In this document: positions 41,803 through 60,334 of the stretch, piece by piece
How positions within the stretch are numbered: the stretch's first letter is position 1
Layout of the letters: every line of letters starts with the position of its first letter
Virus record (IMG/VR): IMGVR_UViG_3300033984_000473
Location: 124,001 to 188,000 of that record
Strand: one strand, 5' to 3'
Length of the DNA stretch: 64,000 nt
The notes under the pieces: generated by a model
What the model saw: the letters and a program-made list of their open reading frames with translations, nothing else
Database searches by the model: none
What the model was told of the DNA's origin: nothing
Position numbers and translations under genes: made by a program

Positions 41803-41877
41803 TGCATCCACTGGGGCTCGAACCCAGACAGCCCATATTAAAAGTATGGTGCCTTATTCCATTTTGGCTATAGATGC
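41803..41877 (-). tRNA. tRNA-Lys(TTT)
   Basis: CCATA-CTTTTAA-TATGG anticodon arm; cloverleaf. Confidence 0.85.
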
Positions 41878-41890
41878 TTTGTTAATCTAG

Positions 41891-41962
41891 TAGCCCCAAC
41901 GGGAATCGAACCCATTTCCCCCCGTTAAAAGCGGGGTGCATCGCCATCAATGCTTTGAAGCC
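41891..41962 (-). tRNA. tRNA-Lys(TTT)
   Basis: CCCCG-CTTTTAA-CGGGG. Confidence 0.85.
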
Positions 41963-41999
41963 ATAGTTGTAACTATCCCTTCAACGCATTGAAAGGCAG

Positions 42000-42035
42000 T
42001 TACTGTTTACTCTTTATGTTCTTTATTGTTTTCAT
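42000..42035 (-). CDS. putative Lys-rich leader peptide MKTIKNIKSKQ
   Basis: 11 codons, 4 Lys; stop overlaps a long hairpin (41969-42003) just upstream of the two tRNA-Lys genes. Confidence 0.45.
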   Translation of the reverse strand: MKTIKNIKSKQ

Positions 42036-42066
42036 ATCTTTATTTTAAATCAATTTTTTTTATTTG

Positions 42067-42142
42067 GCCTCCCAGAAGGATTCGAACCTTCCATCCATAA
42101 GCCCCCACTGGGCTCCGCTTTTCCTACTAAGCTATGGGACGC
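42067..42142 (-). tRNA. tRNA-His(GTG)-like, atypical (A33, G:G acceptor mismatch, encoded G-1 opposite C73)
   Basis: GAGCC-CAGTGGG-GGCTT; canonical T-arm. Confidence 0.55.
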
Positions 42143-42150
42143 ATATTTTG

Positions 42151-42222
42151 AGCGGGAGATGGGGTTCGAACCCACGACCCTCTGGTTGGTAACCAAATGC
42201 TCTACCACTGAGCTACTCCCGC
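42151..42222 (-). tRNA. tRNA-Gly(ACC)
   Basis: GCGGGAG acceptor, TTTGG-TTACCAA-CCAGA, U73. Confidence 0.85.
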
Positions 42223-42297
42223 AATTTTACCCAGAATCGTTTAACTGGGTGATAGTTAGCATGACTATCTTCGCTACATGCAACGATTTTTACTTTG

Positions 42298-42370
42298 AGC
42301 AGAAGACGGGGCTCGAACCCGCAACATCCAGCTTGGAAGGCTAGCACTCTACCAATTGAGCTACTTCTGC
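42298..42370 (-). tRNA. tRNA-Gly(TCC)
   Basis: CTAGC-CTTCCAA-GCTGG, U73. Confidence 0.92.
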
Positions 42371-42486
42371 ATTAATAACGTCAGTAGGACTTAAAGGGAA
42401 CCACTCATCTTTATCCCTTCATCAATGGGTCATTATCCCATATTTGGCGTAATCCATACATTGCTGCACGTCTATCCTACTTTTTG

Positions 42487-42559
42487 AGCCTCAAGTCGGA
42501 TTCGAACCAACGACATCTTGTTTACAAAACAAGTGCTCTACCAACTGAGCTATTGAGGC
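42487..42559 (-). tRNA. tRNA-Thr(TGT)
   Basis: CTTGT-TTTGTAA-ACAAG. Confidence 0.92.
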
Positions 42560-42571
42560 ATTTTAAATTAG

Positions 42572-42645
42572 AGCTCTGTGACGGTATCGAACCGACTCTA
42601 TTCTGGGTTACAAATCCAGTGCACCACCTCTTGTGCGTACAGAGC
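42572..42645 (-). tRNA. tRNA-Thr(TGT), divergent
   Basis: CTGGA-TTTGTAA-CCCAG; T-loop TTCGATA. Confidence 0.75.
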
Positions 42646-42713
42646 ATTGTAATTTTTATTGTCCACTTGAAAAGCCAAGTTCTGGTCAAAAATTTAAAAT
42701 CTACCCTAACGAG

Positions 42714-42795
42714 TGGGGCCGATAGGATTCGAACCTACTCAGCTTACGCAACGGTGTTACAGACCGCCCCAACTCTCCAACTTTGGCGAGACCCC
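42714..42795 (-). tRNA. tRNA-Tyr(GTA)
   Basis: GCGGT-CTGTAAC-ACCGT, long variable arm. Confidence 0.88.
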
Positions 42796-42852
42796 ATTTT
42801 TGATTTTTTGTCTAGCATTTTCCAGAAATCAATAAAACTACATACTCGCCAG

Positions 42853-42933
42853 TGGGCCTAGAGGGACTCGAACCCCCACGTCTTTCAAACTTGGGCTACA
42901 ACCAAGCGAGCCAGCCAATTGCTCAATAGACCC
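42853..42933 (-). tRNA. tRNA-Tyr(GTA), divergent
   Basis: CTTGG-TTGTAGC-CCAAG, long variable arm. Confidence 0.8.
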
Positions 42934-42941
42934 ATTAAGAA

Positions 42942-43001
42942 CAGAGTGATATTTTGGTTCAAATTAAAAGTTTGTTTTTGTTTACTTGCTGAAATCACTC
43001 T
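42942..43001 (-). ncRNA. anticodon-displaying stem RNA, member A (Lys UUU loop)
   Basis: AGAGTGAT/ATCACTCT stem, TTCAGCAA motif, CAAA-CTTTTAA-TTTG hairpin. Confidence 0.6.
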
Positions 43002-43010
43002 TTATCTCTG

Positions 43011-43082
43011 TTGTCCTACTAGGATTCGAACCTAGACGGACTGGCTCAAAACCAGTAATGCTAACCGTTACATTATAGGACA
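43011..43082 (-). tRNA. tRNA-Gln(TTG)
   Basis: U1-A72, ACTGG-TTTTGAG-CCAGT. Confidence 0.9.
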
Positions 43083-43088
43083 ATAATT

Positions 43089-43144
43089 CTAATTCTACGC
43101 AGACACTTACATCGTATGGGCCCCTATGAATCAGTAACAGTCTC
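43089..43144 (-). repeat. repeated structured spacer motif, copy 1 (copy 2 at 56601-56648)
   Basis: GAGACTGTTA-CTRATTC-ATAG...GCGTA-GAATTAG. Confidence 0.7.
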
Positions 43145-43150
43145 TTCTCG

Positions 43151-43238
43151 TCTAGATAACGGGACTCGAACCCGCATAATGCTTTTAAACAATTCTCGAT
43201 TCCAAATCGAGTCGGCTTCCAATTGCCTTCATATCTAG
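43151..43238 (-). tRNA. tRNA-Pro(TGG) with unusually long variable arm
   Basis: CTCGA-TTTGGAA-TCGAG; ~19-nt variable region. Confidence 0.75.
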
Positions 43239-43249
43239 TTAATTATCAG

Positions 43250-43322
43250 TCTAAATGGCAAGATTCGAACTTGCGGTCTCTACGGTCCAAGTGTAGCGGA
43301 TTTCCAACTTTCCCACATCTAG
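43250..43322 (-). tRNA. tRNA-Pro(TGG)
   Basis: CTACA-CTTGGAC-CGTAG, C1-G72, A73. Confidence 0.82.
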
Positions 43323-43337
43323 TTAATTTTTGAACAT

Positions 43338-43371
43338 AAAAAAACCCAGTCTAGATTTCTCTAACTGGGTT
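43338..43371 (-). terminator. attenuator terminator of tRNA operon 1
   Basis: AACCCAGTTAGA...TCTAGACTGGGTT followed by T-run, 16 nt before the first tRNA. Confidence 0.85.
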
Positions 43372-43397
43372 GTATAAATTAATACTTGCGTACTTTT

Positions 43398-43502
43398 CTA
43401 TCCTACAATCACATCCTTCAACATGACATACCCAGTCGTCCCGTTAGGCGTTCCGCCTTTAGGTTGATACTGTTTCGTTTGATATGTTGCTGTTGTTTTC
43501 AT
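43398..43502 (-). CDS. leader peptide 1: MKTTATYQTKQYQPKGGTPNGTTGYVMLKDVIVG
   Basis: 34 aa, translated by hand; 22 of residues 2-25 are K/T/Y/Q/P/G; contains antiterminator ACTGGGT (43430-43436). Confidence 0.75.
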   Translation of the reverse strand: MKTTATYQTKQYQPKGGTPNGTTGYVMLKDVIVG

Positions 43503-43530
43503 AATTTTTTGTTTGTTGAGTTTTACCTCG

Positions 43531-43600
43531 TTGTTTATAAATATACTCTTATTCTTAAAAGTTACACAAAGGTACTACATTTATTTTGATTTGTCAAGTT
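43531..43600 (-). promoter_or_regulatory. tRNA-operon dual promoter cassette, copy 1
   Basis: TTGAC..TACCTTTG-TGTA-ACTTTTAAGAATAAGAGT-ATATTTATAAACAA; near-identical at 58083-58152 and 60266-60334. Confidence 0.8.
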
Positions 43601-43602
43601 TT

Positions 43603-44037
43603 TTATGACTTTTTTTTAATTTTTTTTTGTTTTTTAATCTCATCCCTTATGTTTGCTGCTATTTCGTAGTCTTCATTCTCTACAGCTTCAGCTAATTTTT
43701 CATCTAATGTTTTTTCTAAGACAGGTTTTTCTGGTTTTATCGTTGTATATGGAATGTCAACCATCACCACTTTTACCAATTCACCACCAAAAGCATACCA
43801 TACTCTTTTCTCAAAATGGAAACCATCTTCTTCAAATGTCTCTATCTTGTCTGGCTCACCTAATTGCTCATCAATACTATCGATGTGTTCGATGTTATCA
43901 AGCATGTTGATAAGTCCTTTGATTTGTTCTTCTTTTTCAGCATCGAATTCTTTATTCTTAGCATCTTTTCTTAAAATCTTTTTTTTATTGTTCTTCCCTA
44001 AGAAGTCATTAAAAAGGTCGTCAAATTTATCTGTCAT
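43603..44037 (-). CDS. protein with C-terminal UvrB/UvrC (UVR) motif
   Basis: L..AVE.EDYE.AA.IRDEI. Confidence 0.75.
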   Translation of the reverse strand: MTDKFDDLFNDFLGKNNKKKILRKDAKNKEFDAEKEEQIKGLINMLDNIEHIDSIDEQLGEPDKIETFEEDGFHFEKRVWYAFGGELVKVVMVDIPYTTIKPEKPVLEKTLDEKLAEAVENEDYEIAANIRDEIKKQKKIKKKS

Positions 44038-44476
44038 TTTTTTTGATTTTATTTGTAATTTTTGTGTGCGTTTCTTTCGCATGATACTTAAACAATTCAA
44101 CTACGTTTATTCTATATAGATACATAAAAATACCAAAGAATGTTCCAGCCAAAGCATACATGATGCTCATTGTCATCCAGTAATCATTTGTTAATTGCAT
44201 GATACCATATACTACGATATCATAACCCAATGGGTTTAAAAATAACGCTAACGTTATCAATAAGTTTCCTATTGCTTGTTTTCCTATTTTAAAGAAGACA
44301 TAAGACAATAAAAATGATAGGAATGCCAACCCATAAAGAACGTGCATTGTACTCCAATAGTCGTTTGTTAACTGTGTCAGTTTGTAAACTAAAATGTCGA
44401 ACCCAAACGGGTTTAGAAAAGTCGCTATCATCAGACATGCTGTCCCTATCGCTTTTCTCGTTACTATTCTCTTCAC
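44027..44476 (-). CDS. membrane protein with internal tandem duplication
   Basis: two copies of AIG.....A.FLNP.G.DI.VY...QLTNDYW.TM...Y.LA. Confidence 0.75.
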   Translation of the reverse strand: MKRIVTRKAIGTACLMIATFLNPFGFDILVYKLTQLTNDYWSTMHVLYGLAFLSFLLSYVFFKIGKQAIGNLLITLALFLNPLGYDIVVYGIMQLTNDYWMTMSIMYALAGTFFGIFMYLYRINVVELFKYHAKETHTKITNKIKKNDR

Positions 44477-44582
44477 TATCCATTTTGTTTTATTTTAGGA
44501 CATATCCCACACTCTCAATTAAATGTACGACATCTTATTTTCTAGAACAAGGTAATGCGAATCAACTCATTACCAGTTTAAA

Positions 44583-44768
44583 TTACTTTACAGAATCTTT
44601 TGCTACCTTAGCGGTATCAACAGAAGTAGCTGTAGTGTCAACCTTAACTGAATCAGTAGCAACAGCTGTAGAATCAGTAGCAGTTGCATCAGTAGCTGTT
44701 GCATCGTTTTTACATGAAGTAAAAGATACTGCTACTAATAAAGCTAATGCGAAAATCATTTTTTTCAT
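44583..44768 (-). CDS. small Bacteroidota-type lipoprotein
   Basis: VSFTSC lipobox, TDSTAVATDS low-complexity tail. Confidence 0.8.
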   Translation of the reverse strand: MKKMIFALALLVAVSFTSCKNDATATDATATDSTAVATDSVKVDTTATSVDTAKVAKDSVK

Positions 44769-44826
44769 CTTGTCTTTGTTTTTGTTTATAAATATGTTAT
44801 TTTTTGGTTTTATTGGTACCCCACCA

Positions 44827-45147
44827 TTACTTTAAATACTTTCTAAATGCAAAGATACTCCTGGATTTAAGATAAGTCAAGTTATTTTCGTTGGCATAAG
44901 CCTCTTTTTCAAAAGAAATATTCACATATCCAACTCGATACAACGCTATCAAATACCACACATAAAATGGTAAGATTCCCAGCTCCAATTGCTGCATTAA
45001 ATGAATCTTTTCGTGATTTATTAGCTCTGGATATATATCACTTGCATCACCTATAAATATGAAGGGAAAGAAAGCTAACCCTCTTATCCCCTCACTATTC
45101 AATACCCATTCAAAGAATCGAATGGCTCTTCTACTTACTACTATCAT
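44827..45147 (-). CDS. HExxH zinc-peptidase-like membrane protein
   Basis: FPFIF, INHEKIH..QQ.E, ISFEKEAY. Confidence 0.75.
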   Translation of the reverse strand: MIVVSRRAIRFFEWVLNSEGIRGLAFFPFIFIGDASDIYPELINHEKIHLMQQLELGILPFYVWYLIALYRVGYVNISFEKEAYANENNLTYLKSRSIFAFRKYLK

Positions 45148-45968
45148 TATGATTTAAGTAGCAATTCTTTCATGTCTTTTACCAACTCTCTATGTCCACT
45201 ACCATATGGTTCCCACGCCAACCCCATTGCTTTAAGGTCGTAGTGTTTAACTATCGTTGAATACGATGTTTCACCTTCTGGAAACCCAACAATATAAATA
45301 CTATCAGCCAATTCAGCAGCAAGTCTTAAATCGTGTGTCGAAAAAATAATCGTATTGTATTCATTGCTTTTACCAATTCTAACAAATGATTCTTTCACTT
45401 TTTCGATGTTACCAACATCCAACCCAGAGAACGGTTCATCCAAAATCATAAAGTGTTTAGATGAAAGCATTTGCTCAATGATTGCAGTTCTTTGTCTTTG
45501 ACCACCAGATAATTCACAAGAATATTTGTCTTTGTGTTCCAACAATCCCCAATCAGTTAGATACTCTTTAATCTGAGCCTCTTTTTCAGCCTTTGTAAGC
45601 GTTGATTTTCTCAAAGCATACTCACAAATCTGTGTGATGGTTTTGTGTCTAAAAAGGGTGTATTTTTGGTCTACAAACCCTATGTCGCCCTCTGACAAGT
45701 TCTTTGCATCGTCAGCAACATCGGTAGTTAAGTCACTAATAAGCATTTGACCACTTAATGGCTTCAATAAACCAGTTAGTGTTTTGAATAAGGTAGATTT
45801 ACCTCTACCAGAACGACCAATAAAAGCAATTACTTGCCCAGTTGATTCATGTCCTTGTCTTATGATGTCTTTTTCTTCAAAAGAAACATCTTTAAGGATT
45901 GTTTTTCCATCGTAACCAGCACTTAGGTCTTTAACGTATAATAACGTTTGTTCAGCTTTATAACTCAT
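45147..45968 (-). CDS. ABC transporter ATP-binding subunit (NitT/TauT-like)
   Basis: GRSGRGKST, LSGGQRQR, ILDEPFSGLD, THD. Confidence 0.92.
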   Translation of the reverse strand: MSYKAEQTLLYVKDLSAGYDGKTILKDVSFEEKDIIRQGHESTGQVIAFIGRSGRGKSTLFKTLTGLLKPLSGQMLISDLTTDVADDAKNLSEGDIGFVDQKYTLFRHKTITQICEYALRKSTLTKAEKEAQIKEYLTDWGLLEHKDKYSCELSGGQRQRTAIIEQMLSSKHFMILDEPFSGLDVGNIEKVKESFVRIGKSNEYNTIIFSTHDLRLAAELADSIYIVGFPEGETSYSTIVKHYDLKAMGLAWEPYGSGHRELVKDMKELLLKS

Positions 45969-45971
45969 AGT

Positions 45972-46742
45972 TTAGTAATTTGAATATCTAAAGATTAATT
46001 TTCTTAATTTTGTGATAATGAAGTCTAAGGTTAAACCTACAACTACGATTATGATTTGCAATGCGATTACTTTACCAGCATCACCTAACTTATCATTGTT
46101 CTTGATAAGGAATCCAAGTCCACCAGCGGCCACAAGGATAGATTCAACGGTTACAAGCATCATCCATACGATTGCCAAGTTTTGTCTAACCAACTCAAAT
46201 ACGTAGTCAATACGACCTTTGATTACAACTTCCCATAAACATTCCCATCTGCTGCAACCTAATGTCCTAGCGTGGTCGAATTCTTCTTCTGGAATATCTT
46301 TAATCATTTGCATAAGACTTGTGGTTAAGAATGTTGTCATAAAAACAACAAGAACCCAGACTTGAAGTGTTCTAGCATCATTGATAAGAATTGCAATGTA
46401 AAATGCGATACCAGTCAAAGGTAGATATCTAAGCTTAGATATGAATGTACCAACTGGTTTAAAGAAAGGAATTGCAGATGAATAAGCAAACATAAGTGAA
46501 ATCACGATGGAAATCATTACAGCTTGACTACATAACCAAATTGAACTTGCAATGTGAACGACCAACCCATCGGCCCAAAGGTCTTTTAACCCATGCAATA
46601 CTTGTAGTGGTGTTGGGAAAAGGTGAGTATCACCAAAACTGTTAAGTCCCCAAAACGTTAATAGAATTACTAACCATGATGTCAGTATTGTCGTTTTACT
46701 AGAACCTTTAAGATTCTCAAACGGTTTAAATAATCTTTTCAT
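45972..46742 (-). CDS. ABC transporter permease (NitT/TauT-like)
   Basis: FPTP, multiple TMs, EAA-like FDHARTLGCSRW, GGLG. Confidence 0.88.
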   Translation of the reverse strand: MKRLFKPFENLKGSSKTTILTSWLVILLTFWGLNSFGDTHLFPTPLQVLHGLKDLWADGLVVHIASSIWLCSQAVMISIVISLMFAYSSAIPFFKPVGTFISKLRYLPLTGIAFYIAILINDARTLQVWVLVVFMTTFLTTSLMQMIKDIPEEEFDHARTLGCSRWECLWEVVIKGRIDYVFELVRQNLAIVWMMLVTVESILVAAGGLGFLIKNNDKLGDAGKVIALQIIIVVVGLTLDFIITKLRKLIFRYSNY

Positions 46743-47069
46743 TTAATCTTTTTTAAGTGTTAATTTATATGCTTCTCGGTCTTTAATCATTTTTTGTCTA
46801 AGTGCTTCCAAATCCACTTCTTTCTTTTTGGCTCTTGTAGAACCTTTAAAAGGTGTTCTTTCGATGATTGTGATTTGACGTTCAACTTTTACAATTGTTC
46901 TCATGCCATTCTTATCACCACATCTTTCTAAGATATCGGTAACACCATCAATAGTTTTGTAAGCTTTTGCTTTTAACTCATTATGAGTATAAGAAAATTC
47001 ATAGTTTGGTTGCTCATCAGCATAAAAACCTTTATTTTCTACATGTCCTAAAAATCTAGTTTCTTTCAT
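46743..47069 (-). CDS. hypothetical protein
   Basis: ORF behind a promoter box. Confidence 0.65.
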   Translation of the reverse strand: MKETRFLGHVENKGFYADEQPNYEFSYTHNELKAKAYKTIDGVTDILERCGDKNGMRTIVKVERQITIIERTPFKGSTRAKKKEVDLEALRQKMIKDREAYKLTLKKD

Positions 47070-47139
47070 TTTTAAGTGTTTTATAATTTCTACCTAACAA
47101 AGGTACAACTAATATTTTATATAACCAAATATTTTACAT

Positions 47140-47173
47140 AAAAAAAATCCCTAACTATGTGTTAAGGATTTTT
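47140..47173 (-). terminator. intrinsic terminator
   Basis: AATCCTTAAC...GTTAGGGATT plus T-run. Confidence 0.65.
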
Positions 47174-47190
47174 GTAAGTTTATGTTTCTG

Positions 47191-50399: not shown

Positions 50400-50408
50400 A
50401 ATCTTTTT

Positions 50409-51993: not shown

Positions 51994-52110
51994 TACAAAG
52001 AGTAGGATTCGAACCTACGTAACTCCCTACGTCATGCTTCCAAACTGAAAAGGAATCGAACCTTACACACGAATTCAAGGGGGAGTGCTTTACCACTAAG
52101 CTATCTCCGT
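51994..52110 (-). ncRNA. tRNA-like RNA with ~50-nt insert in the anticodon loop containing a second T-arm
   Basis: acceptor ACGGAGA/TCTTTGT, D-arm, CTCCC/GGGAG stem, inner AAGG-TTCGATT-CCTT, outer GTAGG-TTCGAAT-CCTAC. Confidence 0.65.
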
Positions 52111-52199: not shown

Positions 52200-52346
52200 T
52201 AGACAACAAGATTAACTTTTTTCTTTTTCGTGCTCTAACCATTAAGCTAACCGCCCAGTGTCTTAGGACAGTATGGGACTCGAACCCATATCACGAGCTT
52301 AACAGGCTATAGATTTTTTGTTGCTGAAATAATCTTTCAATGTCTA
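52200..52346 (-). ncRNA. circularly permuted tRNA-like RNA (YrlA/Y-RNA-like), member B (Asn GUU loop)
   Basis: terminal stem, TTCAGCAA, AGC-CTGTTAA-GCT, T-arm, loop-closed acceptor ACTGTCC/GGGCGGT, D-arm, AAAAAAGTTAATCTTG. Confidence 0.75.
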
Positions 52347-52390
52347 GTTACAAACTAAGCAATTTCTCACTTAGCTTATATTTTTGGGTA

Positions 52391-53026: not shown

Positions 53027-53193
53027 TTTTTTTTTCTTTGTTTTTTTGTTTATTATGTTATTATGTTATTATGTTATTGTATTATTCTCTACTTATTATA
53101 CTACAAAGATACTACATTTTTCATTAAAAGTCAAGTAAAAATGAATATTTTTTTAATCTTTTTTACACTTTTAATAAGCTGTAAATCAAGCTG

Positions 53194-53556
53194 TTACCCA
53201 GCCAAATACATACTATTTGACATCAACGCATGTCTTGCAAAATCGGTCTCATCTTGGACGTATTCATTGAACTCAGATTGCTCTAATTCAACTATGTCTT
53301 CGACTTCCCAATTGAACATATCAATGATTTTGTCATAGTTATTGCTGTTGTCAACTGGTGTTGTTAAATCTAATCTAACTTTCATATCTCCAGCTTCAAC
53401 TTTTTTGGTAATGTCTGCTAATTGTTTAAGTGCTTCTTTCTTGTAAGCAACAACGGCTTTGGTATAAGCTTCAATGTGTTGTGCTTTATTTTCTTGAATC
53501 TTAGCAATTAAATCTGCTTTGTTAACCTTGATGGTTCTGTTTCCGTTTCTTCTCAT
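53194..53556 (-). CDS. hypothetical protein
   Basis: ORF in operon. Confidence 0.75.
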   Translation of the reverse strand: MRRNGNRTIKVNKADLIAKIQENKAQHIEAYTKAVVAYKKEALKQLADITKKVEAGDMKVRLDLTTPVDNSNNYDKIIDMFNWEVEDIVELEQSEFNEYVQDETDFARHALMSNSMYLAG

Positions 53557-53577
53557 TGGAATTTATTTTTACGTATG

Positions 53578-53955
53578 TTATTGTATGATATCTCCGACTT
53601 CAACATTTAAGAACAAATCCTCATCAATGTCTTTTTTAATCGTTAACGTTTCGTTAGGCCTTTTGATTGTAATGTAGTTGTCTTTTAAATCTGCTTTTTC
53701 GTTTTCTGAACGACAATTAGCACAATCTTTATTTACAACAATACCGACTGGTAATTTAGTTTCAGAACTTGACCAATAACGCTTATCAGCTACCTTAACG
53801 TCACTTTCTGTAGGTTCGTCTTGATTGCGATAATCAGAAGAATCTGAAAGGATTACAGCATCATAAGTTTCAACGTTTTCTGTTGGTTGTTCAGTTTTAG
53901 GTTTACATGAAACAGTTAAACCTAAAACCAAAGCTACTAAAAACATTTTTTTCAT
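53578..53955 (-). CDS. lipoprotein
   Basis: LTVSC lipobox. Confidence 0.75.
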   Translation of the reverse strand: MKKMFLVALVLGLTVSCKPKTEQPTENVETYDAVILSDSSDYRNQDEPTESDVKVADKRYWSSSETKLPVGIVVNKDCANCRSENEKADLKDNYITIKRPNETLTIKKDIDEDLFLNVEVGDIIQ

Positions 53956-54128
53956 TATGTTCTACTTTTTAGAACTTCAATTTCTTTGTTGATTCTTTTG
54001 ATATCAGAATCATTCAAAGGAACTTTAACGTCAGTTGTTTTCTTTTGTGTTTTCACACCACTTTTTAATTGCTTCTCAAGCATTTCGATTACTCTAGACT
54101 GTCTAGAACGTTTTGCAGCTGTTGCCAT
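53955..54128 (-). CDS. hypothetical basic protein (57 aa, not in ORF track)
   Basis: MATAAKRSRQSRVIEMLEKQLKSG...EIEVLKSRT. Confidence 0.65.
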   Translation of the reverse strand: MATAAKRSRQSRVIEMLEKQLKSGVKTQKKTTDVKVPLNDSDIKRINKEIEVLKSRT

Positions 54129-54147
54129 AGTTAAATTTATTTATTTG

Positions 54148-54252
54148 TAGATGGTACAGGATTCGAACCTGTGAATCTCTTTGTATAGGTATCATACATA
54201 CCACATCAAGACTTTATGTATGCTCAACCTTAAGCCACTCGGTCAACCGTCT
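54148..54252 (-). ncRNA. tRNA-like RNA with extended anticodon arm and no canonical anticodon loop
   Basis: acceptor AGACGGT/ACCATCT, D-loop GAGTGGCTTAA, CATACATA/TATGTATG stem, T-arm ACAGG-TTCGAAT-CCTGT. Confidence 0.55.
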
Positions 54253-54376
54253 ATTTAATGAGAATTTGGGCCATCGGTATCTCATAATTGTTAGTCCTTC
54301 CTTAGCTAACACCCTTACCCAAGCCGTTCCTATGGGCTGGTAAATTTCACTATACTATAGGAGTCAAGTGAATACT

Positions 54377-54452
54377 TGGTGGTACCGAGTGGATTCGAAC
54401 CACTGACACCCGCATCTTCAGTGCGGTGCTCTACCAACTGAGCTACGGTACC
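54377..54452 (-). tRNA. tRNA-Phe(GAA) with encoded CCA
   Basis: CCGCA-CTGAAGA-TGCGG. Confidence 0.93.
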
Positions 54453-54596
54453 TTTTTATCTCGTAGTTTTTAAGGCTCAAGTGATTACATTGCTGCTCAC
54501 TCTAAGTAACCGTGATATAGTACAAACCTATGATATTTCTATACTACAAAGATACTAATCTTTTTTTAAAGTTGCAACCTTTGTATCGTTTTTTTT

Positions 54597-55082
54597 TTAA
54601 CTTTTTCTAGCTAAAATATACTCATATTGTGAGTCAGTATTTGTATTGCCATATACATAGTTTGGAATTCTAGTTAAACACATGTCTTCTAGAACTTTAT
54701 CCAATGGACAACCTTCACCATATTCAAAATAGATAGCACCATATTCAACATAGCTCTCATCAGAATCAAAAGCTTCAACTTCGTTGATATCTCTAACATT
54801 TATGTTTTCATCACTGATAACACAAATTGATTCATAACCTTTTCTATATTTAAAAGCACCTATTTGCTCAAATAACCCTTTACCAATTATGTATTCATCT
54901 TCTTTTGATAAATCTGGAACTACAACCATGTATTCACATTCCAATAAGTCTTTGTGACTATATAGACCACCTTTGAATTCAACTGTTTGTATATTAAATT
55001 GGTTAAGGATTTGGCGAACTCTAGTAACCACATCTGGGTTAGCTCTATTAGACTTCGCCAAATAAACCTTTGGTATGTTCAT
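54597..55082 (-). CDS. hypothetical protein
   Basis: ORF in operon. Confidence 0.7.
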   Translation of the reverse strand: MNIPKVYLAKSNRANPDVVTRVRQILNQFNIQTVEFKGGLYSHKDLLECEYMVVVPDLSKEDEYIIGKGLFEQIGAFKYRKGYESICVISDENINVRDINEVEAFDSDESYVEYGAIYFEYGEGCPLDKVLEDMCLTRIPNYVYGNTNTDSQYEYILARKS

Positions 55083-55429
55083 TATTTCTTACCTTTGGTA
55101 GCTGGAGCCTCGTCAGCAAACCATTCATCATAGATTGATTGTGCTTCCACAAGTTGAACTTCTTTCAAAGCTAAATCCATTTTTGTTCTGTGTAATTCAG
55201 CCACCCATTTAGCAGCGTTGAAATCAGCACCACCTGGACGTAGAGAGTAAGTGTTCTCTGGAGCCAAGTCAGTCAAGTCATTTAACTTGCTATTCAATTG
55301 CAATTTCTCTTTTCTTAGGTTTGCGATGAAAGACTCAACTTCCAATACGGCAGCATCTGCTAAATTTTTCGCTCTGTTTCCTAATGTTGCTGAACTATCC
55401 GCTGATAGCATTTGTGCAAATTTACTCAT
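55082..55429 (-). CDS. hypothetical protein
   Basis: ORF behind a promoter box. Confidence 0.75.
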   Translation of the reverse strand: MSKFAQMLSADSSATLGNRAKNLADAAVLEVESFIANLRKEKLQLNSKLNDLTDLAPENTYSLRPGGADFNAAKWVAELHRTKMDLALKEVQLVEAQSIYDEWFADEAPATKGKK

Positions 55430-55526
55430 AATTTTCTAGTTTTAAATTAAATTGTTTTTGTTTATTTTTTAGATTACAAAGGTATGAAATGTTTTTGACC
55501 TGTGCAAGTTTTTTTTAAAGTTTTTT

Positions 55527-55682
55527 TTAGTCGAGGTAAATATCAAACCATTCAACAGCGTAGAAGTCTAACCACATTCCCATTTCTAAATAGAATTGGA
55601 AAATTCTCTCGTCTCCACCGATTTCCATACGTAGTTTCTCTATGATGTAATCGGCCATGTATTGTAATATCTTTCTTTTCAT
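55527..55682 (-). CDS. hypothetical protein (51 aa, not in ORF track)
   Basis: MKRKILQYMADYIIEKL...FDIYLD; ATG lies 4 nt after the TAnnTTTG box, so possibly near-leaderless. Confidence 0.55.
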   Translation of the reverse strand: MKRKILQYMADYIIEKLRMEIGGDERIFQFYLEMGMWLDFYAVEWFDIYLD

Positions 55683-55709
55683 AATACAAAGGTACTAATT
55701 AGTTTTTTA

Positions 55710-56087
55710 TTATCCAAACAATGTGTTGTGTTTTTTTGAAAATTTTTTAGCAATTCTTTTATAAAACTCTGTTAGTAGCGAACTAGGAATCTTAATCCCT
55801 TCATCTTCAAATATATCCAAGATTTCTTTAGGTGTAAACGTTCCTTCAACAATACCATCTGACCATTGGTCACTCCAAAGTCCCCAAGACTTTTTACCTA
55901 CAATAACAGCTTTTACTATATTAGGGTGTCTTGATACTATTGGGACTCCATTTCTAAAATCTCCATTGTCAAATTTTCTGAATGTGAATTTTCCTTCTGT
56001 TTCGTTGACATCAAATTCAACCTTTACGATAGCACCACAAAAAGATAGGATGCCTTTCCTATTTGATTTAAGGAAGAAGTTGAACAT
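55710..56087 (-). CDS. hypothetical protein
   Basis: ORF; the frame stays open 36 codons further upstream. Confidence 0.6.
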   Translation of the reverse strand: MFNFFLKSNRKGILSFCGAIVKVEFDVNETEGKFTFRKFDNGDFRNGVPIVSRHPNIVKAVIVGKKSWGLWSDQWSDGIVEGTFTPKEILDIFEDEGIKIPSSLLTEFYKRIAKKFSKKHNTLFG

Positions 56088-56238
56088 TTCATTGAAATTA
56101 TCGGAATACTTGGTTAGCTTTTTTTGATGTCTGCTACCAGTTTCCTTTTTACGTAACTCTATACGTTCTTGTCTTGTTAACGGGCTCCCAAGCGGTCACC
56201 CCCATTTTGTGTGTTTTTCATAACATTTATATTTGTTG

Positions 56239-56311
56239 TTGAGGAAGAGGGACTTGAACCCTACTCTACCACCCGTCTAGGTGGTCTTCTAACCAGTTAA
56301 AGTATTCCCCA
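56239..56311 (-). tRNA. atypical tRNA with 6-nt anticodon loop (TAGACG; Val-like or undetermined)
   Basis: acceptor TGGGGAA/TTCCTCA, D- and T-arms present, CCACC/GGTGG stem. Confidence 0.5.
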
Positions 56312-56400
56312 AAATTACCAGAGGTTGCCAGATAGAATTTATAATACCTGTGTTTTCAACCTTTCTCCGTAAATAAAATTACCAGAAGTTACCAGATTTG

Positions 56401-56519
56401 CAGCGGCACCAGGAATCGAACCTAGAACAATGGCGTGACAGGCTATATTGAATGCTGAACGTAATCTTCTTAATCAGATTAACTTTTTTAACATTGTTAT
56501 ACCATTTAACTATACCGCT
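56401..56519 (-). ncRNA. tRNA-Asp-like RNA with the Y-like module inserted in the anticodon arm, member C
   Basis: AGCGGTA/TGCCGCT acceptor, G73, D and T arms; insert AAAAAAGTTAATCT-loop-AGATTACGTTCAGCA-...-GC-CTGTCAC-GC. Confidence 0.7.
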
Positions 56520-56521
56520 AG

Positions 56522-56594
56522 TGGAGCCACGGAGATTCGAACTCCGTTCTGCTGGGTGCAAGCCAACTATTTTCGCCCAGTAAACTATGACCCC
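56522..56594 (-). tRNA. tRNA-Ala(TGC)
   Basis: GTTGG-CTTGCAC-CCAGC; G3:U70 identity pair. Confidence 0.88.
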
Positions 56595-56600
56595 AATTTT

Positions 56601-56648
56601 CTAATTCTACGCTTACAATATGTAGTTCTATGAATTAGTAACAGTCTC
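56601..56648 (-). repeat. repeated structured spacer motif, copy 2
   Basis: GAGACTGTTA-CTAATTC-ATAG...GCGTA-GAATTAG. Confidence 0.7.
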
Positions 56649-56659
56649 ATCTGTAACTA

Positions 56660-57298
56660 TTATTCTCTACCTTGAAACCATCCTTGTAATAGGTAATTTT
56701 CAAGTTCTTCTTTTTTAATCTTTTTGTTAATACTATCTTTGGTTATCCAACATGTACCATATTGGCTATTTGTCTTACCAGTTCCAGTACCCTTTTTCTT
56801 TTCAGACATCAATTTTTTAGTTTCTTCTGAATGATTTCTATCATTCCAATCGAACCTTTTTATTTTACCAGTTAACAACATATTTGTCATATGTGTTGAA
56901 GCTTTATCTCTATGTATTTTAGCAAATTCTTCATCATTTTTTAATTTGTCAGCAAAAGCTTTTCCAGCACAAACTGAACGATGTTTTTGTTGTTCATCGC
57001 TGATAAAACCACCACTTCCACCACCCATTAAATTCATACAGTTTTTATCTGTTATCATTTCTGGTGTGATAGTTTTTATCTCAGCTTCAACCAACAATTC
57101 TCTTGTTTCAAAGAACTCTAAAATTTCTTTATTGAAATTCTCAATCCCATACTTACGCATTGAAGCTCTTAATCTTCTACCGCTACCTAAGTAACCATCA
57201 TTTATGTCATTCGTACTATGCATCCCTACATAATATCTTCCTGTTACATTACATGTTGTTTTATACAAATAATGTATTGTTTTTTCTTTTCTTGTCAT
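56660..57298 (-). mobile_element. GIY-YIG homing endonuclease (Seg-like, NUMOD3) inside tRNA operon 2
   Basis: YLYKTT...G.YYVGMH, YLGSG, YG..NF.KEIL, HSEETK..MS; own ATATTTAT promoter. Confidence 0.87.
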
Positions 57299-57350
57299 TG
57301 TCGTATATCTTTTATTATAAATATACGACAAAGTACAAAAAAGTCAAGGG

Positions 57351-57422
57351 CGGTCTATGAGAGAATCGAACTCTCATCTCTACCGTGACAGGGTAGCATC
57401 CTAGCCGTTGAACGAATAGACC
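57351..57422 (-). tRNA. tRNA-Asp(GTC)
   Basis: CTACC-CTGTCAC-GGTAG, G73. Confidence 0.9.
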
Positions 57423-57431
57423 TTATATTTG

Positions 57432-57503
57432 TAGCCCGTAGGGGAGTTGAACCCCTCTTTCTAGGTTGAAAACCGAGCGTCCTTACCGATAGACGAACGG
57501 GCC
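57432..57503 (-). tRNA. tRNA-Glu(TTC)
   Basis: CTCGG-TTTTCAA-CCTAG. Confidence 0.87.
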
Positions 57504-57511
57504 ATTTTTTG

Positions 57512-57584
57512 CGGAACACACGGGAGTCGAACCCGCAATCTCTTAAGTGACAGTCAAGGATGTTACCATCAACACCTCTGTTCC
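57512..57584 (-). tRNA. tRNA-Asp(GTC), divergent
   Basis: CTTGA-CTGTCAC-TTAAG, G73. Confidence 0.85.
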
Positions 57585-57678
57585 AATTTAGAGTTTCTTT
57601 CCACTCTCAAGTCAACGATGTCTATTATTTCCCCTAGTTACTGTGCCGACCATCGCATTTGCACACGTTCTTTAATTG

Positions 57679-57751
57679 TACTACCAACGGGATTCGAACC
57701 CGTGTTTTACCCGTGAAAGGGGCACGTCCTTACCGACTAGACGATGGTAGC
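57679..57751 (-). tRNA. tRNA-Glu(TTC)
   Basis: TGCCC-CTTTCAC-GGGTA. Confidence 0.9.
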
Positions 57752-57815
57752 ATAGGTGTCCCGTCACTCGTGCACGAGCCATGGCATTACGGGACCGATG
57801 TTTTTCCATATTCTG

Positions 57816-57888
57816 TGGTTCCAGTGGGGCTCGAACCCACGACACCTAGAGCTTCAATCTAGTGCTCTACCAACTGAGCTACAGAACC
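57816..57888 (-). tRNA. tRNA-Phe(GAA)
   Basis: CTAGA-TTGAAGC-TCTAG. Confidence 0.92.
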
Positions 57889-57904
57889 AATTATTTTATT
57901 GCAT

Positions 57905-57934
57905 AAAAAAAGTCTGACTTATTAGGTCAGACTT
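57905..57934 (-). terminator. attenuator terminator of tRNA operon 2
   Basis: AAGTCTGAC-CTAATAA-GTCAGACTT plus T-run, 16 nt before tRNA-Phe. Confidence 0.85.
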
Positions 57935-57959
57935 ATCATTTTGTTAGATTAACTACTCG

Positions 57960-58049
57960 TTAACTTATGACAGTGTTTGACCTTCCGAAAGAGTAATCCT
58001 CTTCGGCTGCGAAAAATGCGATATCAAATATGTTAGTTAATGTTCTCAT
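57960..58049 (-). CDS. leader peptide 2: MRTLTNIFDIAFFAAEEDYSFGRSNTVIS
   Basis: 29 aa; 11 of residues 8-21 are F/D/E/A; antiterminator AGGTCAAAC (57975-57983). Confidence 0.75.
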   Translation of the reverse strand: MRTLTNIFDIAFFAAEEDYSFGRSNTVIS

Positions 58050-58082
58050 AGTTTTTTATTTTTGTGGGTTTCCCCTTTTTGT

Positions 58083-58152
58083 TTGTTTATAAATATACTC
58101 TTATTCTTAAAAGTTATACAAAGGTACTACTTTTTTTAATACAAGTCAAGTT
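58083..58152 (-). promoter_or_regulatory. tRNA-operon dual promoter cassette, copy 2
   Basis: near-identical to 43531-43600. Confidence 0.8.
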
Positions 58153-58156
58153 TTTT

Positions 58157-58474
58157 TTAATCTTTTTTTAATATTTTTTGTAACTTCCTAAGTGTCAGCA
58201 GTTCTAATAATACGTCACCATGACATTTTTCTGGCTTACAGAAGCAACCTAGTGTCTTACCTTCTAATTCATCTAGGGATTCCATCAACTCTGGGCTAGC
58301 CAATACATATTCTTTGTACTTAGATAATGCTTCTTCTTTTGAATCCACTATTTCTTTTGCCAGTGTTGGTCTATCTTTGATTATCGTATAAGGACAACCC
58401 CATTTGGAACCTCTACCTATATAAACATCGAAAGCTTCATCTTTCATGTTAACAATCTTGGTTATATTACTCAT
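58157..58474 (-). CDS. DUF4326 family protein
   Basis: DVYIGRGSKWG.P, L.GK.LGCFC.P..CHGDVL. Confidence 0.88.
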   Translation of the reverse strand: MSNITKIVNMKDEAFDVYIGRGSKWGCPYTIIKDRPTLAKEIVDSKEEALSKYKEYVLASPELMESLDELEGKTLGCFCKPEKCHGDVLLELLTLRKLQKILKKD

Positions 58475-58754
58475 CTTTAAAAATTTTATCTTTAAATCTC
58501 CAGTACCAACCTTTTAAGCCACTAGATACTCTATCATCTTCTTCAGCACAGAAACTTTCAAAAGGTCTTACTTTTAAGTCTAACCATAATTTGCTAGTTG
58601 CTACATTCAAACTAGGATATTTTTTAAATGAATCATCGTAACGCTCTTCATATTCTTTATAATTAGTAAAAATATGAAAATCATTTCGTAACGCTACTTG
58701 TGTTACCATATAATGAATCCAAATCTTATATTTATCATCTTCGCTAAACTCCAT
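58467..58754 (-). CDS. hypothetical protein
   Basis: ORF behind a promoter box. Confidence 0.65.
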   Translation of the reverse strand: MEFSEDDKYKIWIHYMVTQVALRNDFHIFTNYKEYEERYDDSFKKYPSLNVATSKLWLDLKVRPFESFCAEEDDRVSSGLKGWYWRFKDKIFKDE

Positions 58755-58809
58755 TGTTTATTTTTTTTACAAAGGTACAATTAAAAAATGACAATAGCAA
58801 ATATATTTG

Positions 58810-58893
58810 TGACCAAGGTGAGACTCGAACTCACACTCCCTAATGGGAACCAGCTTCTTAGACTGGCGGGTCTACCAATTCCCCCACTCGGCC
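58810..58893 (-). tRNA. tRNA-Leu(AAG)
   Basis: CCAGT-CTAAGAA-GCTGG, long variable arm, A73. Confidence 0.87.
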
Positions 58894-58898
58894 AAATA

Positions 58899-58979
58899 CA
58901 AGATAGTTTTGTGGGATTGAACCACTTAGTTTTGTGTATGAGACAAAATTTTAACCGTTTTGTTTGCAGTAACTATCTT
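58899..58979 (-). ncRNA. anticodon-displaying stem RNA, member D (CAU loop plus T-arm)
   Basis: AAGATAGT/ACTATCTT stem, TACTGCAA, TTTTGT-CTCATAC-ACAAAA, GTGG-TTCAATC-CCAC. Confidence 0.65.
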
Positions 58980-58983
58980 TTAG

Positions 58984-59058
58984 TACATCTTGTAGGATTC
59001 GAACCTACGACTTCCACCTTGTAAGGATGGCACTCTGAACCAACTGAGTTAAAGATGC
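58984..59058 (-). tRNA. tRNA-Val(TAC)
   Basis: CCATC-CTTACAA-GGTGG. Confidence 0.9.
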
Positions 59059-59064
59059 ATATTG

Positions 59065-59145
59065 TACCCATGGCGAGAGTCGAACTCGCACCCCTTTCGA
59101 GCCTAGTTTCTAAGACTAGTGTGTCTACCATTCCACCACACGGGC
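59065..59145 (-). tRNA. tRNA-Leu(TAG)
   Basis: CTAGT-CTTAGAA-ACTAG, long variable arm. Confidence 0.9.
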
Positions 59146-59204
59146 AAATTTCGGTCTATAAGGTCAGACCGACAACCAGAGCCTTCTCCCTAGGGAGATG
59201 CCAG

Positions 59205-59289
59205 TAGCCGAAGTGGGACTCGAACCCACACGCCCATTACTGAGCACTGGATTTTAAGTCCAGCGTGTCTACCATTCCACCATTCGGCC
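59205..59289 (-). tRNA. tRNA-Leu(TAA)
   Basis: CTGGA-CTTAAAA-TCCAG, long variable arm. Confidence 0.92.
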
Positions 59290-59299
59290 AAATTATCTT

Positions 59300-59524
59300 C
59301 TATTCAGAAGATATCATTTGTTTAGCTTTCCCTTCATATAAGTCAGCAAGGTTTATTTTTCCTTCAGTGTTGGTCAATCCTTCCAAAAGACCACTAGCTT
59401 CCCATTTTTCAATGATTTTAGCTTTTTGATATTCACCAACACATCTATGATGCATAAACTTTCTATCATGAATAGCCGCAACTCCTTGGCTATGTTCTCC
59501 GCAATGTGCACATGTAAATGTCAT
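59300..59524 (-). CDS. small Zn-ribbon protein fused to a major-capsid N-terminus-like segment
   Basis: CAHC...HHRC then IIEKWEASGLLEGL...NLADLYEGKAKQMI. Confidence 0.6.
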   Translation of the reverse strand: MTFTCAHCGEHSQGVAAIHDRKFMHHRCVGEYQKAKIIEKWEASGLLEGLTNTEGKINLADLYEGKAKQMISSE

Positions 59525-59553
59525 AATTTTTAGTTTTAATTTTTGTTATTTTG

Positions 59554-59625
59554 TAGGAATAGGGAATTTTGAAATCCCGACCTATTGTATGTAACACAAT
59601 CGCTCTCCCTCTGAGCTACACTCCT
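59554..59625 (-). tRNA. tRNA-Val(TAC), divergent
   Basis: ATTGT-GTTACAT-ACAAT; T-loop TTCAAAA. Confidence 0.75.
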
Positions 59626-59635
59626 AATTGATAGC

Positions 59636-60019
59636 TTATACTACCTTTATAAATTCTCCTTTGTCAATGGCTTTTGAAATCCATCTATTTAAGTCTGAAC
59701 CTTTCATTTCAGCTTCAAAGGTTGTTGTACCTAAATCTTCTGATAATTGAATTCCAGGAACAGAATCAAATATTGGTTCTCTATCTTCAACCGTTGCAAT
59801 TGGAAACTGATATGTTCCAACACTCAATTCTACTTTGTAATATAAATTACCACTTACATAATGACTAAATTTAGCCATATTTTTTGACTTATACAAGTCT
59901 TTCTTTACTTCGTTTTTATCAAACGCTTTTGCTTCCATATACATTGTTGTTTTTATTTGTCCAGATGAAGCATAAGTAACAAAAGAACCTATTTCAACTA
60001 TTTCTTCATTATTTTCCAT
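59636..60019 (-). CDS. hypothetical protein
   Basis: ORF inside tRNA operon 3. Confidence 0.7.
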   Translation of the reverse strand: MENNEEIVEIGSFVTYASSGQIKTTMYMEAKAFDKNEVKKDLYKSKNMAKFSHYVSGNLYYKVELSVGTYQFPIATVEDREPIFDSVPGIQLSEDLGTTTFEAEMKGSDLNRWISKAIDKGEFIKVV

Positions 60020-60036
60020 CTTTTCTTTTTTTTTAG

Positions 60037-60108
60037 AGGCACCGACTGGATTCGAACCAGTGTACGAGGTTTTGCAAACCCCTACCTAAACCACTCGGCC
60101 ACGGTGCC
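60037..60108 (-). tRNA. tRNA-Cys(GCA)
   Basis: GGGGT-TTGCAAA-ACCTC, U73. Confidence 0.92.
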
Positions 60109-60115
60109 ATTAAAT

Positions 60116-60145
60116 AAAAAACCCACCTAATTTCTTAGATGGGTT
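60116..60145 (-). terminator. attenuator terminator of tRNA operon 3
   Basis: AACCCATCTAA-GAAA-TTAGGTGGGTT plus T-run, just before tRNA-Cys. Confidence 0.85.
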
Positions 60146-60172
60146 CCATTGTTATAGTATTTAATTACTTAC

Positions 60173-60250
60173 TTAACAAGCATAACCCATCCTGTCTGCT
60201 ACTAGCAAACATAAGACTAAAAGGACTACTACGTTGTTAAAATTTTTCAT
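60173..60250 (-). CDS. leader peptide 3: MKNFNNVVVLLVLCLLVADRMGYAC
   Basis: 25 aa; residues 7-17 are all V/L/C; antiterminator GGATGGGTT (60184-60192). Confidence 0.75.
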   Translation of the reverse strand: MKNFNNVVVLLVLCLLVADRMGYAC

Positions 60251-60265
60251 TGTTATATTTTTTGT

Positions 60266-60334
60266 TTGTTTATAAATATACTCTTATCTCTAAAAGTTAT
60301 ACAAAGGTACGAAACATTTTTGTAATAGTCAAGC
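60266..60334 (-). promoter_or_regulatory. tRNA-operon dual promoter cassette, copy 3
   Basis: near-identical to the other copies; hairpin loop AGAA changes to GAGA. Confidence 0.8.

Follow-up and report, generated by a model that had tools for sequence, protein, structure and literature searches.

Phage tRNA operons preceded by putative leader-peptide attenuators of matching amino-acid composition

Leader-peptide attenuators of Proteobacteria, such as those of trp, his, leu, thr, ilv and pheA, possess a translated leader with regulatory codons, an intrinsic terminator and an antiterminator overlapping the 5' arm of that terminator. In attenuators of the trp/his type the supply of aminoacyl-tRNA is read via the position of the ribosome. 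The his attenuator of Salmonella is derepressed when tRNA-His is lowered (hisR mutants), so that leaders of this kind can register the abundance of a tRNA and not amino-acid supply alone. To our knowledge, all described leader-peptide attenuators control amino-acid biosynthesis or synthetase genes. That of Escherichia coli pheST (pheM leader) controls phenylalanyl-tRNA synthetase and is thus a case of attenuation of a translation-machinery gene serving the sensed tRNA, while T-box elements link the state of a specific tRNA to the choice of terminator or antiterminator upstream of translation-related genes. In Anabaena, a tRNA array operon that is normally silent becomes active upon impairment of translation, as a response to translational stress in general; the text of the paper describing it contains none of the words leader, attenuator and terminator (PMC8421152). 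Searches of the full-text literature gave no description of leader-peptide control of tRNA genes, phage or cellular. Here, an arrangement of the trp/his kind is described upstream of three tRNA operons in a stretch of 64,000 nucleotides (nt; the window) which represents approximately positions 124001-188000 of the IMG/VR virus record IMGVR_UViG_3300033984_000473 (232,931 bp), from a large freshwater phage. Each of the three cassettes is probably a ribosome-mediated transcription attenuator whose output is the tRNA operon behind it.

A preliminary description of the window, made from its sequence, had reported three tRNA operons of one architecture. Reading of the sequence and alignment of the upstream regions showed that all of the elements named in it are present (Table 1). 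All features discussed are on the minus strand, and the G+C content of the window is approximately 33%. The order in each cassette is a promoter, some 42 near-identical transcribed bases, an A-rich spacer, an ATG-initiated open reading frame (ORF), a spacer of 25-26 nt, a G+C-rich hairpin, a T run and the first tRNA. The near-identity of promoter and leading transcribed block was seen over approximately 67 bp in the alignment, and a 20-mer from the core of this block has three exact copies in the window (0.08 expected at three or fewer mismatches). The Bacteroidota -33/-7 promoter type is TTG ... TAnnTTTG, and the cassette promoters (TTGAC, 18 nt, TACCTTTG) are of this type. The short leader ORFs, each with a start and a stop codon, lie 52-69 nt past the -7 box, and their length, start, stop and frame are conserved in relatives. 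Between leader and first tRNA there is an intrinsic terminator, with a hairpin of -11 to -15 kcal/mol and a T run. As the tRNAs begin 7-16 nt past this terminator, there is no room for a promoter of their own. The tRNA genes listed previously were recovered by ARAGORN and Rfam, the second tRNA-Thr(TGT) (42572-42645) being detected by Rfam alone, with an anticodon loop that agrees when read by eye. The genes placed under this putative regulation are tRNAs and a few small ORFs, and not amino-acid biosynthesis or synthetase genes.

Table 1. Positions in the window of the elements of the three cassettes and of the tRNA operons behind them.
Feature	Position	Strand	Details
Cassette 1 promoter	43567..43597	(-)	TTGAC (43593-43597), 18 nt, TACCTTTG (43567-43574)
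Cassette 1 conserved transcript start	43531..43561	(-)	Hairpin CUUUUA-NNNN-UAAGAG, then GTATATTTATAAACAA
Leader ORF 1	43398..43502	(-)	34 codons, MKTTATYQTKQYQPKGGTPNGTTGYVMLKDVIVG; K/T/Y/Q/P/G at 17 of codons 2-20
Predicted antiterminator strand 1	43429..43438	(-)	Codons 22-25; pairs with terminator 5' arm, -13.2 kcal/mol
Intrinsic terminator 1	43338..43371	(-)	Stem AACCCAGTTAGA / TCTAGACTGGGTT, then T run; T run 15 nt from tRNA-Pro
tRNA operon 1	41802..43322	(-)	Pro, Pro, Gln, Tyr, Tyr, Thr, Thr, Gly, Gly, His, Lys, Lys
Cassette 2 promoter	58119..58149	(-)	TTGAC, 18 nt, TACCTTTG
Cassette 2 conserved transcript start	58083..58113	(-)	Hairpin, then GTATATTTATAAACAA
Leader ORF 2	57960..58049	(-)	29 codons, MRTLTNIFDIAFFAAEEDYSFGRSNTVIS; codons 8-18 are F/D/A/E save one Ile
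Predicted antiterminator strand 2	57967..57982	(-)	Codons 23-28, GGTCAAACACTGTCAT; partner ATGATAAGTCTGACC overlaps terminator 5' arm
Intrinsic terminator 2	57905..57934	(-)	T run 16 nt from tRNA-Phe
tRNA operon 2	56238..57888	(-)	Phe, Glu, Asp, Glu, Asp, GIY-YIG-like ORF (56660-57331), Ala, two odd tRNA-like genes
tRNA operon 2, tail		(-)	tRNA-like gene with insertion (56401-56519); tRNA with 8-nt anticodon loop (56238-56311)
Cassette 3 promoter	60302..60332	(-)	TTGAC, 18 nt, TACCTTTG
Cassette 3 conserved transcript start	60266..60296	(-)	Loop GAGA (AGAA in cassettes 1 and 2); stem kept
Leader ORF 3	60173..60250	(-)	25 codons, MKNFNNVVVLLVLCLLVADRMGYAC; codons 7-17 all V/L/C
Predicted antiterminator strand 3	60183..60193	(-)	Codons 20-23, AGGATGGGTTA; pairs with terminator 5' arm, -14.4 kcal/mol
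Intrinsic terminator 3	60116..60146	(-)	T run 7 nt from tRNA-Cys
tRNA operon 3	58809..60108	(-)	Cys, 127-amino-acid ORF (59636-60019), Val, 74-amino-acid ORF (59300-59524), Leu, Leu, Val, Leu

The cores of the leaders had been described as built from the amino acids of their own operons, and a permutation test in which the 20 amino-acid labels were shuffled, with leader sequences and set sizes kept, bore this out: 47 of 85 residues are cognate compared with 20.8 +/- 5.4 expected (0 of 1,000,000 permutations). Among codons 2-20, 17/19, 10/19 and 11/19 residues (leaders 1, 2 and 3, respectively) belong to the leader's own set, while only 0-4 of the 19 fall in the set of any single other operon. 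The match extends to isoacceptors, as the codons of a leader cover each isoacceptor encoded downstream; the Leu codons of leader 3, for example, are CTT, TTA, TTG and CTA, and the tRNA-Leu anticodons of operon 3 are aag, taa and tag.

A scan of IMG/VR with a pattern consisting of the promoter and first transcribed bases identified a fourth cassette in the same phage (L112, record positions 209118-213507), approximately 21 kb past the end of the window. It possesses the same promoter block, a leader MRTINIHMISISNWRRNSHQVSGMFNCEGGTEV (beginning MRTINIHMISISNWRRNSHQ), a terminator and a 59-amino-acid ORF, followed by tRNAs for Ser, His, His, Trp, Ile, Met and Asn (three copies). The codons of its leader specify S/H/W/I/M/N/R, and the version of this operon in relatives extends to Arg and Ser(gct). 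The four operons split nearly all 20 amino acids among them, and the core of each leader is composed of those that fall to its own operon. With all four leaders combined, the cognate residues are 64 of 117, where 30.4 +/- 6.1 are expected (0 of 1,000,000 permutations), and the amino-acid match is far above chance. An extra 36-codon ORF rich in K/R/T was also seen at L112 (approximately 2373-2480, minus strand), between the conserved 5' block and the leader; relatives are without it.

Translation of the same nucleotides in the two remaining frames gave, for 20 designs, own-set fractions of 0.28 and 0.21 compared with 0.60 in frame, the frame of the ORF being the highest in 20/20 designs (Wilcoxon p about 9e-5). 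Type-D leaders have a position at which Ser is retained although its codon changes between the TCG and AGC families. Frame specificity and this codon-family switch argue for selection on the encoded amino acids, that is, on decoding. These observations bear on the possibility of an RNA-level switch that works without translation, in which a protein or a directly bound tRNA, as in a T-box, would choose the structure and the ORF would be incidental. Such a switch could be envisaged since alternative terminator/antiterminator pairing is frequent in ribosome-independent systems, and since the transcript opens with a hairpin that is conserved, followed by an AT-rich block. It is considered very unlikely, given that the tRNA-set match is confined to the frame of the ORF, that Ser survives the change from TCG to AGC and that the ORF is conserved in length, start and stop. 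Furthermore, a specifier loop, T-box sequence or stem I was not found, and an Rfam search of 40000-61000 (E <= 1) gave tRNAs and sub-threshold chance matches; with no family but tRNA reaching gathering score, no known leader family or T-box was detected in the region.

The segment late in each leader ORF that was said to be complementary to the 5' arm of the terminator was found in all three cassettes of the window. Folding was performed with the ribosome footprint masked codon by codon and with the 3' arm of the terminator withheld, representing the moment before its synthesis. The 5' arm was predicted to pair upstream as long as the A site had gone no further than codon 19 in cassettes 1 and 2, or codon 17 in cassette 3, this pairing being lost after the ribosome had advanced past codons 17-19. 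The range of A-site positions that permits the antiterminator is the region in which the matched residues concentrate. In cassette 2 (type B) the helix is longer, interrupted and long-range, and is kept in eight relatives. Across 27 cassettes, duplexes with a leader's own terminator arm averaged -14.1 kcal/mol, compared with -8.8 kcal/mol when arms were swapped (0 of 200,000 permutations), and in the 4x4 matrix for the phage of the window the own arm was the strongest in every row. The distance from stop codon to arm is 19-33 nt in 26 of these 27 cassettes, the last (L265) being mis-parsed. Comparison of own and swapped duplexes within single cassette types was weak (p 0.04 to 0.8), because arms inside one type are too similar; the hairpin parser also failed on a few sequences. 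Covariation of terminator and antiterminator, which the preliminary description had proposed as a check, was observed for type C, to which cassette 3 belongs. On a MAFFT alignment of nine sequences its helix was 96.3% paired, compared with 27-64% when slid by 1-3 columns, and two compensatory pairs were present, U:A to C:G (synonymous in Gly) and G:C to A:U (synonymous in Val). This covariation score was attained in 4 of 500 shuffles. A simple ungapped register analysis failed for type A.

The layout was identified in about 45 other distinct phage contigs, including the cultured phage Tunturi_5 and the 642-kb phage LR756502.1. Relatives were reached by two routes, namely the 127-amino-acid ORF of operon 3 (followed by alignment of its relatives) and the promoter pattern, and the script criteria were a hairpin with a T run near a tRNA on the same strand and a short ORF ending just upstream of the hairpin. 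Close relatives keep the four cassette types, and the order of residues drifts with composition constant; cores of type C, for example, read VVVLLVLCLLVA, IVLVLCLLVA, ILVLSLCLCLLVV or LQVLLLCLLVVV. The expectation that leader composition should track tRNA content in related phages was also borne out, in that where tRNAs are grouped differently the leaders are changed accordingly. L015 possesses one leader, MKNRNHIHEHQIWH... (...NHIHEHQIWH...), before tRNAs for Trp, Trp and His and a second, MKNNTNIISRIIRRRN... (...IISRIIRRR...), before Ile, Arg, Arg and Arg, while the leader of L263, MVNITINIQQQQQQQT..., has seven Gln codons and precedes four tRNA-Gln genes. Other pairings are ...AASWAPSYEPSSAYES... 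with Tyr, Pro, Ser, Trp, Glu, Glu and Ala (L270), MNAICNILPLFKSPKVKPLFYLVPKV... with Leu, Leu, Tyr, Leu, Val, Pro and Phe (L265), MLTITNIQRTSLHTSSPISQRCSLPLCSPS... with Gln, Ser, Ser, Cys, His, Pro, Arg, Thr, Thr and Leu (L272), and MKQLVIIKHIKHVIAK... with Lys, Lys, Ile, Val and Ile (L275). In the uncultured phage LR756502.1, the leader ...NLNMNLNTLTVVNNTL... is followed by Asn, Asn, Leu, Val, Ile, Thr, Val, Thr and Leu. Tunturi_5 (PP885688.1) is a cultured jumbo phage of Tunturiibacter psychrotolerans (Acidobacteriota). Its leader, MKTLCLSSYCLSSSLSLSDGW... (MKTLCLSSYCLSSSLSLS...), is followed by a terminator and, after 7 nt, by tRNAs for Leu, Cys, Leu, Leu, Tyr, Leu, Ser, Ser and Ser; the Ser codons of the leader (AGT/AGC, TCC/TCT and TCG) fit the three tRNA-Ser genes, whose anticodons are gct, gga and cga. 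In the paper on Tunturi_5, 43 tRNAs are counted and leaders are not mentioned.

Taking 18 independent designs, the mean own-set fraction was 0.52 compared with 0.29 +/- 0.025 for permuted pairings (0 of 1,000,000), and it was 0.517 compared with 0.307 (again 0 of 1,000,000) when the four designs of the phage of the window were left out. The element is widespread, modular and evolutionarily labile, as expected of a codon-matched sensor. It could be argued that the attenuator is real but reports general translation capacity (ribosome lag, infection stage or any stress), with the specificity of the leader being of little consequence, as the antiterminator would be released whenever a ribosome slowed down within the sensor codons, for whatever reason, and an N-terminal motif is common to all leaders. 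The cyanobacterial tRNA array reportedly induced by general translational stress would be a precedent (PMC8421152). A general sensor, however, needs no composition that tracks the operon within one phage, across 18-20 designs and down to isoacceptor codons, and this explanation is regarded as unlikely.

The leaders might instead encode functional micropeptides with terminators of their own, the tRNAs being made by constitutive leak-through and the match arising from local codon bias. Leader 3 (MKNFNNVVVLLVLCLLVA...) is hydrophobic and resembles a signal peptide or membrane helix, and the peptides of each leader type form a conserved family. That four compositions in one phage should each fit their own operon, and that unrelated designs elsewhere should do likewise, makes this extremely unlikely. 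In addition, a micropeptide has no need of complementarity to the 5' arm of its own terminator, and the sensor cores vary in residue order while composition is kept.

Nearly all leaders begin M-[K/R]-[N/T]-x-x-N-I (window, L015, L263, L272, L274, L276, L279, L404 and L405), which suggests shared descent of the cassette types or a need for efficient initiation or early elongation. Searches by blastn against isolated phages gave tRNA-level matches alone and no close DNA relative. The conserved-block 20-mer was found in IMG/VR in its own record and in one unrelated phage, where it stands before a protein gene and is compatible with chance in AT-rich DNA. A pattern derived from the divergent L015 cassettes returned noise and L015's own contig, and nothing else. 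In bacterial genomes, the promoter-plus-leader pattern gave chance matches alone among the matches listed, with no cellular counterpart; two were inspected, of which L284 proved to be the promoter of an ordinary Flavobacterium gene and L373 an unrelated tRNA-Val.

Attenuation of the trp/his type sensing the amino acids of the downstream tRNAs, as put forward in the preliminary description, is supported by composition tracking, frame specificity, isoacceptor sampling, own-arm complementarity and the gap of 7-16 nt. Host RNA polymerase would start at the Bacteroidota-type promoter and transcribe the short leader ORF, in which roughly the first 17-20 codons would demand the aminoacyl-tRNAs whose tRNAs are encoded downstream. 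With these tRNAs plentiful, the ribosome would reach the late part of the ORF and cover the antiterminator segment or let it refold; the terminator hairpin would then form and transcription would end 7-16 nt before the first tRNA gene. If any sampled tRNA were scarce or uncharged, the ribosome would stall in the sensor codons, leaving the late-ORF segment free to pair with the 5' arm of the terminator, and polymerase would continue past the terminator to transcribe the tRNA genes together with the few small protein genes that lie between them. The net effect would be a negative-feedback control of supply, in which an operon is made on demand and turns itself off once its products restore decoding speed. 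As the trigger, the preliminary description suggested host anticodon nucleases or starvation by way of example; in nature the tRNAs may be depleted by host defences that target tRNAs, by host shut-off, by codon demand or by starvation.

RNA sequence data were also considered. Sequencing runs containing parts of the window are mostly freshwater metatranscriptomes, and contigs of four of these were placed on 57300-60400. A contig of 152 nt, identical to 57902-58053, begins 4 nt ahead of the start codon of leader 2 and ends 3 nt beyond the U run, without reaching tRNA-Phe (57888), as expected of a terminated leader RNA. This RNA support is weak because the contigs are unstranded and depth is low. 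Use of the contigs as a measure of read-through was rejected, as they are too short and unstranded.

Several points weigh against attenuation as set out here. Leader translation, stalling and regulated read-through are steps that we infer from sequence. The supporting RNA consists of one short contig with strand information absent, and a 151-nt contig from another run (60086-60236) crosses terminator 3 into tRNA-Cys, which could represent read-through RNA or DNA carry-over. The match of leader to operon is imperfect: the leaders share their opening residues irrespective of operon, leader 1 is without a His codon despite the tRNA-His downstream, and Ile is present in some type-C leaders. As regards folding, the minimum-free-energy structure always includes the terminator; the switch must therefore be kinetic, and thermodynamic folding is no proof of it. 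Upstream pairing of the 5' arm is predicted, too, when no ribosome is present or when one is held at the start codon, and only cassette 1 shows a clear 1:2 structure that would impose termination on an untranslated leader. In cassette 1 and type D, the stop codon lies approximately 10 codons past the antiterminator strand, so that a ribosome bound at the stop leaves this strand uncovered. These folding caveats lower confidence in the mechanistic detail and not in the existence of the switch. Finally, a promoter-like TAnnTTTG box (TACCTTTG) lies between the type-B terminator and tRNA-Phe in L010 (approximately 10960-11000) and L013 (approximately 10945-10985), and might bypass the attenuator there.

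A number of further features were noted in and around these operons. The 127-amino-acid ORF of operon 3 belongs to a family of proteins of approximately 100-127 amino acids encoded inside the tRNA arrays of dozens of large phages (L242-L283, L404 (gp277) and L405), usually just after the first tRNA or tRNAs of an attenuator-controlled operon. As to its function, Pfam gave one sub-threshold match and PHROGs a family of unknown function; its AlphaFold model has a pLDDT (predicted local distance difference test) of 71, and Foldseek against the PDB returned nothing with E below 0.5. ORFs of the GIY-YIG type, resembling homing endonucleases, lie within or beside tRNA operons, one splitting operon 2 between tRNA-Asp and tRNA-Ala and the other at 40442-41056. 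The tRNA-like gene with an 8-nt anticodon loop at the end of operon 2 (ARAGORN anticodon 'agac') also ends the type-B operon in L010, L013 and L252; it may be quadruplet-reading or otherwise unusual. Overlong tRNA matches of 96-119 nt (51994-52110, 56401-56519 and 40294-40389), whose length suggests insertions or introns, and T-arm-like fragments (near 54142-54179 and 52261-52291) were also seen. A second tRNA-Phe(gaa) (54377-54452) stands alone behind its own TAnnTTTG box (approximately 54548-54555), without leader ORF or terminator, and may serve as a constitutive counterpart of the attenuated gene. Suppressor-type tRNAs (UGA/UAG) occur in or near attenuated operons (anticodon tca in L247, L250 and L253; cta in L074), which hints at stop-codon recoding in part of the phage group.

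The first 30 or so transcribed bases (the hairpin and TATATTTATAA) are conserved across cassette types and phages. This AT-rich block may serve in the initiation of translation, in RNA stability or as a second promoter used by a phage polymerase. As a cassette-specific signal, TATATTTATAA was rejected: it is also found upstream of the GIY-YIG-like ORF of operon 2 (57315-57325), and a copy with one mismatch (44786-44796), upstream of a 61-amino-acid ORF (44583-44768), likewise counts against cassette specificity.

Phage tRNAs are usually explained by compensation for codon usage and, more recently, by replacement of tRNAs destroyed by host defences. The cassettes bear on two questions, the regulation of phage tRNA genes and the reason for the near-complete tRNA sets of large phages. 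If the proposed attenuation is correct, the phage would monitor its decoding capacity amino acid by amino acid, which would account for the grouping of the tRNAs; classical attenuation would gain a new class of target, in which the sensed molecule is the product, and a new leader design, that of composite leaders sampling individual isoacceptors. Each operon would be predicted to be induced by loss of its own tRNAs only, the leaders should be usable as ready reporters of ribosome stalling at chosen codons, and in phage genomes that lack annotation a leader sequence should foretell which tRNAs are encoded in the operon next to it. Tunturi_5 on Tunturiibacter psychrotolerans, a cultured carrier, offers an experimental system. 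A broader proposal, to which somewhat less than an even chance is given, is that large phages of several bacterial phyla run their tRNA genes as self-regulating, codon-resolved modules, each of which continuously tests, by a composite leader, how well the cell decodes the module's own codons and fires only when this capacity drops. The tRNA operons would then be induced to counter host shut-off and host defences that cleave or deplete tRNAs, would be no constitutive supplement to codon usage, and would represent the first direct feedback of tRNA supply on tRNA transcription exerted at the ribosome.

Compared with the systems outlined at the outset, the phage cassettes differ in several respects. 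T-box elements are untranslated and bind uncharged tRNA via a specifier loop and the T-box sequence, whereas the phage cassettes are frame-specific. The Anabaena array is cellular and responds to general stress, whereas the phage operons each possess a specific leader (PMC8421152). Attenuators of the trp/his type control enzymes, while the targets in the phages would be tRNA genes. Classical leaders carry a run of one or two amino acids, in contrast to the phage leaders, which mix 2-15 amino acids and several isoacceptor codons (the seven-Gln leader of L263 excepted). The cassettes are, moreover, unlike the classical attenuators in being phage-borne, in having Bacteroidota-type initiation signals without a Shine-Dalgarno sequence and in showing no sequence or Rfam match to known leaders. 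The pheST attenuator is likewise cellular and serves one amino acid, with a synthetase as its target; in the phage cassettes the target would be the tRNA genes themselves, closing a direct feedback loop.

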